Shown: one piece after another, positions 926-60,650 of the stretch
How positions within the stretch are numbered: the first letter of the stretch is position 1
Layout: each line of letters opens with the position of its first letter
Sequence record: OK905446.1
DNA length: 64,000 nt
Strand: one strand, 5' to 3'
Program-made: the position numbers and the translations under genes
Notes under the pieces: generated by a model
The model's database searches: none
Told to the model about the DNA's origin: nothing
The model's input: the letters and a program-made list of their open reading frames with translations, nothing else

Positions 926-2449
926 CTATGCGGCAAGGTCTACTTTCTTAACTGCATATTTGAACTCTTCTTGGTTGTAAAGCTCAATACGCTGCATCCC
1001 ATGCTTCATCGTATAATTTACGTGTGTATACGGCTTCTTAGCGTTCGCACGTTTCGGCTTGATTGCTAAGTTGTCGATAATATCAAACAGCTTCGCAGTA
1101 ACTTTCGAACCGTGTTTACGTAGAATACGACCAATCGACTGCAAGTTGATGATCTTACTCTTCGTTGGGTGAGCGAAGATTACGTTGTGAAGTTTCTTGA
1201 TACTGATACCAGTCGAGAATACACCATACGACGCGACGATAATCGCACCATCAATGTCTTCTGCAATCTTCTTCACATGCGTGCGGTCATCGGTTTTAGT
1301 CTCACCTGATACGTAGAACACTTTCTCAGGGTCATAAACTTTCTTCAATGCTTCGTACAGCAACTTACCATGCTTGATGTTCTTAAACAGCAATAGCGTG
1401 TTTTCGCCTTTCTTGGCACTTAGATGATGCGCAAGCTTGATCAAATAACGATTTCGCTGCTTGTTCTCAAGAATGAATTTCATTTCTTCTTGATATGAAC
1501 TGCCTTTCATTTCATCACGCAGTGGCTGTGGATATTCGAGCATTAAGCAGTTGATCTTCAGATCAGTTACTTGTCCCTCTTCCATTAGCTGTGCAGTTGA
1601 AACAGGTCGGAAAATATCACCGAATGAACCCACATACTGTAGAATATTCGCTTTACCGTCTCTAAGTGAGCCAGTCAATCCGATTTTGTATTCACAGTTG
1701 GTCATTTTCTTGATAATGCCGTCTAATGACTTACCCGTTGCTAAGTGACATTCATCGACTAGCAACATACCAAACTGATCAAACCATGCTTTGTCTTGCT
1801 TAACAGCCGACTGCCATGTTGAAACGACAATGTTACAATCACCGATTGCATCACGGTCAACACCACCGCGAATCTGATAAATATCGCCATGTTCGAATAA
1901 ACGATAATCTAAGAAGTCATCACGCATTTGCTGAACAAGTGCAGTGGTCGGTACGATAATCAATACTTTCTGACACTCGTGATTCTCTAAGAACCATTTG
2001 GTCAATAATGACTGAATCAACGATTTACCGGCTGATGTTGGTAGATTTAATAGACTATGCTGATGGTTGATGCCATGAAACACTGAGTCCATTTGATACC
2101 AGTATGGGCTAATCTTATTGCTACCGCCGTAAATATCAAGCGACGCAACCCATGCTTCAAAATCTTCGCGAGTGATTTTCTCAACTGGATCAATCATCGG
2201 GTCAGTTTCAATCGAATACATCATGTTTGATGCGAACGCTCTAGCTTGTCCGACTAAACCATATGGCAAGAAACCTTGATAAGTCATTAGTCGAATCTTA
2301 CCATCCCATATGCCCATTTTAAATTTAGGGTTGAATTTGTACCCGTCAGTCAGAAATGAAAAGTAGTCAATCATTTCATGAGTAATGCTTGGCTCTGCTA
2401 CGACTCTCGCATAACTCTCATCGAAGTACTCAATTTTAATATCTGCCAT
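926..2449 (-). CDS. uvsW: UvsW SF2 DNA helicase
   Basis: Walker A LPTSAGKS, DECH box, motif VI QSIGRILR; 507 aa; T4 synteny. Confidence 0.95.
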   Translation of the reverse strand: MADIKIEYFDESYARVVAEPSITHEMIDYFSFLTDGYKFNPKFKMGIWDGKIRLMTYQGFLPYGLVGQARAFASNMMYSIETDPMIDPVEKITREDFEAWVASLDIYGGSNKISPYWYQMDSVFHGINHQHSLLNLPTSAGKSLIQSLLTKWFLENHECQKVLIIVPTTALVQQMRDDFLDYRLFEHGDIYQIRGGVDRDAIGDCNIVVSTWQSAVKQDKAWFDQFGMLLVDECHLATGKSLDGIIKKMTNCEYKIGLTGSLRDGKANILQYVGSFGDIFRPVSTAQLMEEGQVTDLKINCLMLEYPQPLRDEMKGSSYQEEMKFILENKQRNRYLIKLAHHLSAKKGENTLLLFKNIKHGKLLYEALKKVYDPEKVFYVSGETKTDDRTHVKKIAEDIDGAIIVASYGVFSTGISIKKLHNVIFAHPTKSKIINLQSIGRILRKHGSKVTAKLFDIIDNLAIKPKRANAKKPYTHVNYTMKHGMQRIELYNQEEFKYAVKKVDLAA

Positions 2450-52876: not shown

Positions 52877-53140
52877 ATGTCACAACAAACTCCAGAACAA
52901 GTAATCGAGCAGAAAGAAGCAGTAATCAAAGATCTTAAAGTTCGTACCTTTGACCTACAAGAAGCTCTTCAAGCTGAACGTAACTCATTCGGTCAATTCG
53001 TAGGTGTACTAGCGCAACTACTAGATTTCGATCAAGAAAAAGCAAGTTCTCTTCAGAACTACGTTGACGAAATCGCTTACCTAACTGGCAAAGCTGAACG
53101 ACCTGTTGAGGTCGAAGCTGTAGAAGAAGAAGCTGAATAA
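52877..53140 (+). CDS. gp57A: tail fibre chaperone
   Basis: Short acidic coiled coil LKVRTFD; synteny gp1-57A-57B. Confidence 0.75.
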   Translation: MSQQTPEQVIEQKEAVIKDLKVRTFDLQEALQAERNSFGQFVGVLAQLLDFDQEKASSLQNYVDEIAYLTGKAERPVEVEAVEEEAE

Positions 53141-53595
53141 TGAAACTATCTAAGTTCCTTGAGAGTCAGGGAACTTACGTTGGTATCAGATTAGACGAAG
53201 CGAGTAAGCAAGAGCTTGTTCGATTGCAACAAACGCTTCGTTTAAAAAATCCGTTAGATCCAGATAAATTTCACGTGACTGTGCTTTATAGTCGTAAGCA
53301 AATTGATGTGCCTGTAGTAGATACCACTTTCGTTGCCACTGTCGAACAAATTGACTGTTGGAAAACGCAAGACGGTAAGCACGCTGTCGTTGCTAAGATG
53401 TCATGTCCTGCTCTTGTAGCGCGTCACGAAGACCTTATCTCTATCGGTGGTACTCACGACTACCCTGACTATCAACCGCACGTCACGTTATCGTATGACG
53501 ACGCTATCACACCGATGTCCGTTAACACTGAAGTTCGTCTTGTTAATGAATATCTCGAACCACTAGACCTAGATTGGGTTGAAAATAATGACTGA
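53140..53595 (+). CDS. acb1: 2H phosphodiesterase, gp57B/Acb1 anti-CBASS family
   Basis: Two HxT motifs (FHVTVLYSR, PHVTLSYD), GTYV, THDYPDYQPH, EPLDLDW. Confidence 0.88.
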   Translation: MKLSKFLESQGTYVGIRLDEASKQELVRLQQTLRLKNPLDPDKFHVTVLYSRKQIDVPVVDTTFVATVEQIDCWKTQDGKHAVVAKMSCPALVARHEDLISIGGTHDYPDYQPHVTLSYDDAITPMSVNTEVRLVNEYLEPLDLDWVENND

Positions 53596-53842
53596 CTTAT
53601 CTACTGAAGCAGTACTGCGAAAGTATCAAGAAGACCCTGAATCACTGAACTCCGATGAAAACGTCGTTCTATTGACGTACGTAGTTGGTTTGCAGACCGA
53701 TCAGATTACTTTGCTTAAAGAGAACAACAAACTTTACGACAAAGCTATTCTTGAGCTTCAACAAGCAGTTTCGCAACTTCAAATCAAGCACGCTGCGCTT
53801 GAACGAGGCGAGACTGAAAGCGGTATTATCATCTCCGCTTAA
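53588..53842 (+). CDS. hypothetical coiled-coil protein
   Basis: ORF overlapping gp57B stop; heptad pattern. Confidence 0.65.
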   Translation: MTDLSTEAVLRKYQEDPESLNSDENVVLLTYVVGLQTDQITLLKENNKLYDKAILELQQAVSQLQIKHAALERGETESGIIISA

Positions 53843-53859: not shown

Positions 53860-53981
53860 TTGACTTCATCTGAAAAGGATGTAGAATGTATTTCATCGAG
53901 TCGAGAGACAGAAAACAAAATCTTAACTCGATGAAATACTTGAAAAAAAGATGTTGACTTTCGCTGAAAAGCTGATAAGAT
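53860..53981 (+). promoter_or_regulatory. tandem sigma70 promoters with A-tract UP elements
   Basis: TTGACT-16-TAGAAT (53860-53887) and TTGACT-16-TAAGAT (53954-53981). Confidence 0.75.
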
Positions 53982-53989
53982 TAACACAG

Positions 53990-54097
53990 TTGATTAAGCG
54001 AGCTAGAGTTCATCGTTCTCGCCTCTTCATTGAAGATGAACAACTTGATTAAACAGACTAGACTCATCGTTTCTGTCTCTTTGCTGAAGATGAGTAA
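53990..54097 (+). ncRNA. two tandem 53-55 nt H-type pseudoknot repeats
   Basis: Direct repeats with compensatory changes in both stems. Confidence 0.7.
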
Positions 54098-54247
54098 TAT
54101 TTTAAATGTGCGCTAGCCGCAATGAATACATAGGGGCAGTTAAGTTCTGCTGAGCAGCGAGAAGTCTTAGCGGACTAACTCACGAACAAAAACTAGCTGA
54201 GTTAAAATTCGCTCAGTCGGCGTGCAAGTAGCGCACATTTAAAATAT
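54097..54247 (+). ncRNA. structured RNA closed by perfect 19-bp stem
   Basis: ATATTTTAAATGTGCGCTA (54097-54115) pairs with 54229-54247. Confidence 0.55.
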
Positions 54248-54262
54248 CGAGAGTACATTGGT

Positions 54263-54385
54263 CGAGTGTTGGTGTAGTGGCAGCACACGTAGCATACTGT
54301 AATCAGACATGATTATATTCAGCAACCAATTTACGCATATCATAGGGAGATCGTGGGAACAGTTCGATTCTGTTACACTCGACCA
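54263..54385 (+). tRNA. interrupted tRNA-Pro(AGG)-like gene, 49-nt insert at 28/29
   Basis: C1:G72, A73, CCA, D and T arms; removing 54290-54338 restores CGATC/GATCG stem with loop ATAGGGA. Confidence 0.7.
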
Positions 54386-54418
54386 ATGTCCTCTCACTAA
54401 CAAAGCGAGGTGAGCAAT

Positions 54419-54574
54419 TTGATTGTCTATCTTCTCGCACTAGTATTCATAGTTCTATTTGCCTTGGACATTGAAGAAGAAAAGGTGCGTAATCATACTT
54501 TTACGCTAATCACATGCGAACGGGTCATTAATCCCGTAATTAAAGCGCACGATATTGGGTTGTGTTGTGATTAG
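54419..54574 (+). CDS. possible 51-aa membrane peptide (TTG start)
   Basis: GAGGTG RBS; MIVYLLALVFIVLFALDIEEEK... Confidence 0.35.
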   Translation: MIVYLLALVFIVLFALDIEEEKVRNHTFTLITCERVINPVIKAHDIGLCCD

Positions 54575-54657
54575 CTAAGGCAATATAAAACAAGGATTAC
54601 TGGTTCTTGCGTAGGGAATTACCGTTAGGTCTGCGCAAGAACTCGAAAACATATTGA

Positions 54658-54782
54658 TGCGGGTTGGTGTAGTGGTTAGCACACGTAGCAAAAAAACTGA
54701 TTCTGATAAGAATCTGTACGGCAATCAATTCGCATATCATTCATAAGATCGTGACGCAGGTTCGAATCCTGCACCCGCATCA
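54658..54782 (+). tRNA. interrupted tRNA-Met(CAU)-like gene, 50-nt insert at 28/29
   Basis: TGCGGGT/ACCCGCA acceptor, D and T arms; removing 54686-54735 gives CGATC/GATCG stem with 8-nt loop ATTCATAA; no encoded CCA. Confidence 0.6.
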
Positions 54783-54797
54783 ATATGTTTTTACAAC

Positions 54798-54918
54798 GGA
54801 GAGTTAGCTCAGTCTGGTAGAGCAAAAGAATGTTAAAGAATTCTGATAAGCATTCATGCTGCAAACCCTAACTAGGTAAATCTTTTTGTCGGTGGTTCAA
54901 ATCCACCACTCTCCACCA
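54798..54918 (+). ncRNA. tRNA-shaped RNA with 51-nt anticodon loop
   Basis: GGAGAGT/ACTCTCC-A-CCA, canonical D and T arms, AAAGA/TCTTT stem enclosing hairpin + CTGCAAA. Confidence 0.7.
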
Positions 54919-54931
54919 CTTTCGAGGTTTT

Positions 54932-55300
54932 ATGAATAAGTTTGATGACATAAACGACGAGCTAGATTGTATTTTGCATCGTTGTGAGATTGTAAAGCGC
55001 AATCTTAGAAAATATTGCTCATTCGCTGTTGAAATGCAGTATCGACTTATGATAAACTTCATCGGCATGGGTTGCTATCAACAAGTACTGCCTGTGTTAG
55101 ATAATCTCAACTATCACCCTGACACTAGTCAGCTTGATTGCCTAGAGATTAGACGGACGATTAAAGAATTGTTGCTCTGTGCAGATAAACTTGATTTTCT
55201 ACACCAACAAGACATGTTTCATCAAGTGAAGACATCTGCGCTTATAGCAGAAGAAGCAAACATCTTTGCTGCCAAAGTAGGTCGATTTCTTGAGAGATAA
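54932..55300 (+). CDS. hypothetical protein, 122 aa
   Basis: GAGGT RBS; fills the space between RNA genes. Confidence 0.65.
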   Translation: MNKFDDINDELDCILHRCEIVKRNLRKYCSFAVEMQYRLMINFIGMGCYQQVLPVLDNLNYHPDTSQLDCLEIRRTIKELLLCADKLDFLHQQDMFHQVKTSALIAEEANIFAAKVGRFLER

Positions 55301-55301
55301 T

Positions 55302-55379
55302 GGCCCGTTAGCTTAACTGGTAAAAGCAGTCGGCTCATAACCGAAAGATAGTTGGGTTCGAGTCCCACGCGGGTCACCA
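55302..55379 (+). tRNA. tRNA with CAU anticodon (Ile2 or elongator Met)
   Basis: Cloverleaf, loop CTCATAA, CCA; GGCCC acceptor resembles Ile2 type. Confidence 0.85.
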
Positions 55380-55401
55380 GTTAAAATAATGAAAAAAGTT
55401 C

Positions 55402-56693: not shown

Positions 56694-56809
56694 AGTCGGG
56701 TAGCTCAGTGGTAGAGCACGAAGAATGATACTGTCAAGTATCGCTCCAGCACTCTTTCAATTGCCTGTTAAGCACGTGGTCGCTGGTTCGAATCCAGCCC
56801 CGACTGCCA
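56694..56809 (+). tRNA. interrupted tRNA-Asn(GUU), 41-nt insert at 28/29
   Basis: Removing 56721-56761 gives perfect cloverleaf CGTGC-CTGTTAA-GCACG, G73, CCA. Confidence 0.8.
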
Positions 56810-57068: not shown

Positions 57069-57342
57069 TAGAAAGATCGCAGAAAGTTGAAATTTTTTTC
57101 AATTTTCTGCGAAAATACCGCAAATCGTCAAAATTGGTGTTATAAGTACTATTATACAAACAAAAACAATTTTTATTTTTTGCAAGAGAGCATTCAATGA
57201 CACATTCGATTACACATTCATCTGAGACATTACGCAGCGATTTTCTGCGCTCAGAATTCGTGTATCTAGCGAATCCGTGTGCAAAACAAAACTGGGATTC
57301 CCTCTTGTAGTCCGATAGTATAACATAGAAGTATACTTGAGG

Positions 57343-57365
57343 ACGCAAATAGCGTCCTTTTTTTA
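57343..57365 (+). terminator. intrinsic terminator
   Basis: AGGACGC-aaata-GCGTCCTTTTTTT. Confidence 0.8.
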
Positions 57366-60576: not shown

Positions 60577-60650
60577 GGGCCGTTAGCTTAATGGGAAAGC
60601 GCCTCACTTGCAATGAGGAAGATAGGGTTCGACTCCCTGCGTGTCCACCA
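60577..60650 (+). tRNA. tRNA-Ala(UGC)
   Basis: G3:U70, loop CTTGCAA, CCA; irregular acceptor. Confidence 0.8.

Follow-up and report, generated by a model that had tools for sequence, protein, structure and literature searches.

What kind of element stands between the predicted early promoters and the tRNA genes of KVP40-like Vibrio phages, and what would its role be there? These phages have been studied extensively and find use against vibrios in aquaculture, and the head of their tRNA region has so far been annotated as empty or as spurious tiny ORFs. The window, by which we mean the whole 64,000-nt stretch of record OK905446.1 that was analysed, matches the Vibrio phages VS1 and VS2 in this region at 100% identity and 48 further KVP40-like straboviruses (Schizotequatrovirus, Mylasvirus) at 77-96%; on this identity, its source is a KVP40-like Vibrio strabovirus. 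According to the KVP40 annotation, the locus lies 3' of homologues of the T4 genes 3, 1, 57A and 57B, and about 29 tRNA genes are found downstream, from 54.8 to 63.5 kb. The features leading up to the locus are as follows:

53140-53595: gp57B homologue, upstream of the pseudoknots
53579-53842: 87-aa ORF between gp57B and the pseudoknot locus
53860..53887, + strand: predicted promoter P1, TTGACT-16-TAGAAT, with an A-rich tract upstream
53888..53939, + strand: conserved hairpin in the P1 leader, with 19-nt arms (89% complementary) and a 14-nt loop
53954..53981, + strand: predicted promoter P2, TTGACT-16-TAAGAT, with TG before the -10 hexamer

In some T4-like records and relatives gp57B is labelled as the anti-CBASS protein Acb1 (2H phosphoesterase), so that an anti-defence gene is the nearest protein-coding neighbour but one of the locus.

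The earlier note had placed the element directly behind early promoters, and this position was borne out. Apart from P1 and P2, nothing in the 64 kb matches TTGACT-N16-TAnnAT (expected number of matches 0.11), and the hexamers of the two are conserved in the relatives, being invariant in 10 phages. From their sequence, both are read as conserved sigma-70-type promoters that are probably strong and of the early type. The hairpin begins directly after the -10 hexamer of P1 and is thus an extra element on P1 transcripts. The repeat itself begins 8 nt past the -10 hexamer of P2; judging by this spacing, transcription from P2 should start about 1-3 nt before it, and the transcript would begin essentially with the first repeat unit. 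The two units and their parts are:

53990..54041, + strand: pseudoknot unit 1 (covariance model score 67.6 bits); 5' single strand 53990-97; stem S1 53998-54002 / 54018-22; loop 1 54003-07; stem S2 54008-14 / 54035-41; junction GUU 54015-17; loop 3 54023-34
54042..54044, + strand: 3-nt linker from unit 1 to unit 2
54045..54095, + strand: pseudoknot unit 2 (covariance model score 78.2 bits); 5' single strand 54045-52; stem S1 54053-57 / 54072-76; loop 1 54058-61; stem S2 54062-68 / 54089-95; junction GUU 54069-71; loop 3 54077-88

Each unit consists, in this order, of an 8-nt single strand, the 5' arm of S1 (5 nt), loop 1 (4-5 nt), the 5' arm of S2 (7 nt), the GUU junction, the 3' arm of S1, loop 3 (11-12 nt) and the 3' arm of S2, which makes it an H-type unit. 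TRF described the tandem arrangement as a repeat with a period of 54, 2.1 copies and 78% matches; the two-unit cassette measures 106 nt, with 78% identity between unit 1 and unit 2. The earlier note had proposed two tandem RNA pseudoknots with arms in A-B-A'-B' order and six compensated changes between them. The sequence was found as it had been quoted, and the compensated changes were recovered in 4 of the 5 S1 pairs and 2 of the 7 S2 pairs.

To go beyond the two copies in the window, the alignment A3 was used, which holds 16 distinct units from 11 genomes, namely the window, nine further KVP40-like genomes and one marine contig. With the H-type structure imposed, all cells with letters (189 of 189, 100%) formed standard pairs, with the reservation that the sequences are related and the cells are not independent events. 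Shuffled alignments reached 84% pairing, none of 500 shuffles reached 100%, and sliding the 3' partner by 1-3 columns reduced pairing to 25-55%. Double-sided changes were seen in 7 of the 12 pairs. For example, pair 13:29 of unit 1 changes from G-C to A-U in nt-1 and the K566 group, pair 9:33 in S1 of unit 2 changes from A-U to G-C in phi-Grn1, and the S2 pairs 19:52 and 22:49 of unit 2 carry compensated changes in the K566 group. In three rows (K566, F86, D482 unit 2) the aligner put a gap at pair 9:33, and an A-C mismatch is the alternative reading for F86 and D482. In the marine contig, both S1 and S2 have wholly new sequences that are fully compensated. Since thermodynamics alone does not single the fold out (z = 0.16 for the nested minimum free energy, with each stem taken singly at -2.3 to -7.3 kcal/mol), the structure rests on this comparative evidence, by which both stems are proven and the two H-type pseudoknots confirmed as real. 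Units 1 and 2 are separate copies of one structured RNA module.

The unpaired parts of the module behave differently from the stems. Invariant columns number 26 of 52 and are mostly those of the loops and the junction, together with stem-closing positions. Loop 3 opens with an invariant pyrimidine run and ends in UGAA, A being found only in its last bases. Loop 1 occurs in four forms among the units, and close relatives differ by one-base loop indels; the fourth natural form, CUGA, was seen in unit 1 of phage TCU-VP03-AIR1 (PP712906.1). That the loops are invariant even where the stems of the marine lineage wholly differ fits a recognition surface and not mere stability. Two further base-pairing candidates were rejected. 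A perfect 11-nt complementarity between the loop of the P1 hairpin (53904-14) and unit 2 (54070-80) is lost in phi-Grn1 and K566, and a self-complementarity between the 8-nt 5' segments of the units is lost in nt-1, CZ01 and F86.

These data also bear on the idea that no RNA structure exists and that the repeat is a DNA-level element (protein-binding or promoter-like), a short coding region or a product of chance. This idea could draw on a -10-like TAGAGT hexamer that overlaps loop 1 of unit 1, and on the short ORFs annotated here in some records. However, the 12 base pairs are kept through double-sided changes in all sequences, the one-base loop indels between close relatives would break any reading frame, and the TAGAGT-type hexamer is not conserved, given the four forms of loop 1. 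We regard this explanation as refuted in practice.

A covariance model of the unit found exactly two copies in the window, at the sites listed above, and none elsewhere in it; pattern scans of the whole KVP40 genome in IMG/VR likewise gave these two units only. The element is present at the same place in 50 of 50 KVP40-like records, as one locus per genome, with a single unit instead of two in phage 1.081.O. Conservation in this region is highest in the units, whose identity to the window is 86-96%; the promoters reach 66-97% and the RNA that follows 61-97%. Loop-anchored pattern scans were run over IMG/VR, 241 million metagenome records and one genome each of 185,579 prokaryotic species. Beyond the KVP40-like phages they yielded one real lineage, consisting of L139 (contig PBMB01000011 of a marine MAG) and the Tara contigs L153 and L154; all other matches were discarded because their stems fail or the site lies within an ORF. 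Among the 185,579 species genomes, represented by one genome per species and scanned with a strict pattern, strain-variable Vibrio loci lying outside the sample, there were five chance matches and one phage-like MAG contig, and no bacterial counterpart. A blastn search of 72,556 plasmids and 5,426 complete E. coli genomes found no copy of the unit.

In the marine contig L139 a single unit with identical loops lies 9 nt upstream of a tRNA-Asn gene on the same strand, about 190 nt behind a duplicated promoter resembling T4 early promoters. Upstream of the unit and tRNA-Asn, L139 (about 1090-1330, minus strand) and also L153 and L154 carry a direct duplication of about 120 nt, each copy of which holds an A-tract, a TTGTAT-N17-TATAAT promoter-like site and a small hairpin. 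The ORFs of L139 are orphans, with no PHROG match and one Pfam match (DUF4942), and for this reason the contig, although binned as Chloroflexota, may be of phage origin. When fragments of the marine lineage were compared with the window by tblastn, no common protein was found, and hence no shared protein partner.

No Rfam 15 family covers 53990-54097 at gathering scores, and nothing plausible appeared even at E = 10; in the literature on KVP40 pseudoknots, transcriptomes and ncRNAs nothing relevant was found. On sequence and structure, then, the units are a new RNA motif. Covarying stems with an invariant junction in a pseudoknot of about 50 nt are what small ribozymes and pseudoknot riboswitches usually show, and small ribozymes have been described beside phage tRNA genes. 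The unit could accordingly be thought of as a small self-cleaving ribozyme or a ligand-binding aptamer, whose invariant loop and junction bases would form the catalytic or binding pocket and whose duplication in tandem would yield products of one unit's length or sharpen the response. Against this stand the lack of any Rfam ribozyme or riboswitch match even at E = 10, and the absence downstream of an expression platform, a regulated ORF or a terminator. We consider a ribozyme or aptamer quite improbable.

What follows the units is a series of structured RNAs and tRNAs:

54097..54247, + strand: structured RNA of 151 nt, closed by a 22-bp stem and containing three inner hairpins
54249-54395 and 54646-54791: two RNAs resembling tRNAs, each with D and T arms (z = -5.0 and -5.7)
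54798-54915 (118 nt) and 56694-56806 (113 nt): tRNA genes (Rfam 55.8 and 48.4 bits)

The 151-nt RNA begins after a gap of 1 nt behind unit 2, has a z-score of -6.4 and shows covariation in 22 of 42 pairs among eight phages; it (54097-54247) has no Rfam match. In VH7D and R10Z its interior is deleted and the pseudoknots are retained. It is a neighbour and not a part of the pseudoknot element, and it probably sets the 3' end of the leader that is proposed to be released. In the two tRNA-like RNAs, the acceptor stems are lengthened to 19-21 bp by complementary flanks and an insert of about 50 nt lies in the anticodon region; they give a weak tRNA-Sec match (E = 0.022) and bear a pseudo-tRNA label in some relatives. 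Both tRNA genes listed above were missed by ARAGORN. In the first of them, the anticodon loop contains, according to the alignment, about 46 inserted nt, and a homologue, a tRNA with a 46-nt insert, lies at about 461-555 of L139. Three side observations were made in this region: a weak, truncated Y-RNA-like (YrlA) match at 54727-54820 (E = 0.84), a tRNA at 60577-60647 that scores 46.3 bits with Rfam and has no ARAGORN call, and a homing-endonuclease gene annotated in PP712906.1 in the stretch matching window positions 54097-55400. No terminator-like site was found between the units and 57339, the first being that at 57339-57359, and the tRNA array has promoter-like sites of its own.

This layout gives weight to the main rival explanation, in which the units are a cis-acting leader of the stable-RNA transcription unit, working either as an antitermination or anti-Rho signal in the manner of HK022 put or of rrn leaders, or as a guide or insulator for RNase P or RNase III. 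The units always lie on the same strand as the stable RNAs and immediately 5' of them (1 nt here, 9 nt in L139), there is one core-conserved locus per genome, the arrangement of tandem promoters, leader and stable RNAs within long stems resembles that of an rrn operon, and the transcription unit is largely untranslated up to the terminator-like site just given. However, the units do not match the gamma-proteobacterial boxA consensus (PMC5725501): by eye, the units of the window agree with it at 6-7 of 10 positions and unit 2 of the K566 type at 8 of 10, and a search of the + strand from 53.8 to 54.8 kb, with up to one mismatch, found no site. The topology of put is taken to be a different one, the word "pseudoknot" being absent from PMC9378689. 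Further, the promoter-like sites of the tRNA array make long-range antitermination not obviously necessary, a duplicated module would be unexpected for a cis signal, and the unit in L139 lies far from its promoter, at the distance given above. A cis-acting leader is held to be possible but rather unlikely.

The reading that we favour, tentatively and with less than even confidence, is that the units are an early, processed leader RNA which acts in trans as a protein-binding decoy by means of its invariant loops. As soon as infection begins, the host RNA polymerase would use the two strong early promoters to produce a non-coding transcript whose 5' end holds the units. When the stable RNA next to them is matured, they would be set free as a small, stable RNA; in this phage the cut would fall at the neighbour's stem of 19-22 bp, which is of the kind cleaved by RNase III, and in the marine lineage at the 5' end of the tRNA, by RNase P. 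Instead of a terminator, the next feature, 1-9 nt downstream, is the end of a helix or a tRNA, and the 3' end would thus be defined by processing. Acting as a decoy or sponge, the freed RNA is proposed to use its unpaired, invariant loops and flanks to bind a protein; the foremost concrete form of this idea, unlikely when taken overall, is a decoy of the TenpI type aimed at an endoribonuclease. The fold, the conservation, the promoters, the adjacency, the lack of coding potential and the distribution are what the analysis shows, while release by processing, action in trans and the protein partner are what we infer.

Several facts argue for the decoy reading, namely the duplication with diverged stems and invariant loops, and the extreme strength predicted for the promoters; an architecture equal to that of published TenpI is a further point in its favour. 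With loops kept and stems diverged between the tandem copies, misfolding between copies would be avoided and the dose doubled, and a single copy suffices in phage 1.081.O and L139. The Acb1 label of the upstream gene also counts in its favour, but as weak guilt by association. Other facts argue against it. The element is fixed at the same place in all 50 relatives, although genes for counter-defence tend to vary; a role in cis would account equally well for its lying always immediately 5' of stable RNAs; and the searches gave no bacterial counterpart, no nearby toxin-like ORF and a loop signature unlike that of TenpI and CptI. A more specific proposal would make the element a genus-wide core decoy, a toxin-less antitoxin-like cassette that a lytic phage makes from its strongest early promoters and that is freed by the host enzymes of tRNA and rRNA processing, which disarms a Vibrio type III or other endoribonuclease defence before it fires; taken as a whole, this is unlikely.

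Whichever reading holds, a small, defined and testable RNA has been obtained, and a region without useful annotation is now seen to hold a covariation-proven motif absent from Rfam, followed by more unannotated structured RNAs. If the decoy reading is true, this would be the first time that an RNA counter-defence is seen to be fixed throughout a phage genus, and the architecture of type III antitoxins would be linked to tRNA-processing pathways. If the cis-leader reading is true, the stable-RNA operons of phages would, like rRNA operons, possess a leader signal of their own.

Of the known systems, the type III antitoxins invite the closest comparison, and it was with these that the earlier note had compared the units. 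They have been reported as tandem direct repeats of 31-62 nt in 1.9-5.6 copies with a promoter upstream (PMC3401426, Table 2), and the TenpI repeats among them measure 39-57 nt in 1.9-3.0 copies, tenpIN being found in Vibrionales (PMC3401426). In the TenpI of known structure, two non-identical H-type pseudoknots of about 51 nt with single-stranded ends make up a cassette of 102 nt, and each repeat is active singly (PMC13682666), and divergence of up to 35% between antitoxin repeats is common (PMC12283969). As far as architecture goes the comparison stands: the period of 54, the 2.1 copies and the promoter 8 nt upstream resemble type III antitoxins in general, although single-copy relatives exist, and the two non-identical H-type pseudoknots of about 51 nt, their single-stranded flanks and a cassette of about 102-108 nt resemble TenpI in particular. 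In other respects it fails. The units are followed by tRNA and ncRNA genes instead of a Rho-independent terminator or a ToxN, CptN or TenpN gene, they have no Rfam match, and they are encoded by a lytic phage, beside tRNAs. The signature of TenpI and CptI is a 1-nt loop 1 and a long A-rich loop positioned for A-minor contacts with stem 1 (PMC13682666, PMC12283969), whereas loop 1 of the units has 4-5 nt and loop 3 opens with pyrimidines and is not A-rich. Nor was any sequence or model similarity found to the bacterial loci searched. For example, the unit model finds nothing in the small plasmid NZ_CP056218.1, which has a tenpI locus according to PMC12283969, and none of the ORFs of this plasmid could be identified as TenpN with PADLOC, NCBIfam, Pfam or a PDB sequence search.

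The same comparison raises the question of whether a complete phage-borne type III toxin-antitoxin locus is present, with the units as the cognate antitoxin. A promoter and two repeats of TenpI-like size (PMC3401426) are what such a locus would begin with, but the terminator and toxin gene do not follow, and the next 3 kb are taken up by structured RNAs, by tRNAs and by small ORFs without a type III toxin match. No toxin-like ORF was found nearby: the small ORFs of these 3 kb have no match at or above the Pfam gathering score, and PADLOC gave marginal matches only (E >= 0.015), none of them to a type III toxin family. A complete locus is thus close to refuted, and together with the non-RNA explanation it receives only a sliver of our confidence.

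The toxin-less form of this architecture is said to occur in the Pectobacterium phage phiTE, whose pseudo-ToxI consists of tandem pseudoknots without a toxin gene, is reportedly proposed or shown to titrate the type III toxin of the host, and is reportedly recognisable by its sequence similarity to the host's ToxI. The units share with it that they are phage-encoded pseudoknot repeats lacking a toxin. They are unlike it in being present in 1-2 copies, in being fixed across a whole phage group and in having no host counterpart that could be found. The earlier note's suggestion of a decoy antitoxin thus met with no host RNA to mimic, since the unit was not detected in the bacterial species genomes, plasmids and E. 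coli genomes searched, and the core presence in 50 relatives and the unit placed 9 nt before a tRNA in another lineage also point away from an antitoxin mimic.

Leaders that act in cis form the other group of known systems. Like HK022 put and the boxA leaders of rrn operons and lambda, the element is a promoter-proximal structured RNA on a long early or untranslated transcription unit, and its tandem promoters are as in rrn; unlike the rrn and lambda boxA leaders, its units carry no match to the boxA consensus (PMC5725501). Within the T4 family, the leader of the gene 32 mRNA offers a further parallel. The arrangement of the units next to their neighbours differs from it, with two copies, different loops and no ORF behind them.

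The gene 32 leader is said to carry at its 5' end, in front of gene 32, an H-type pseudoknot that is bound by protein and from which autoregulatory binding proceeds towards a ribosome-binding site. In both cases, then, an H-type pseudoknot stands at the 5' end of a transcript of a T4-family phage, a position that for the units described here is predicted from promoter spacing.
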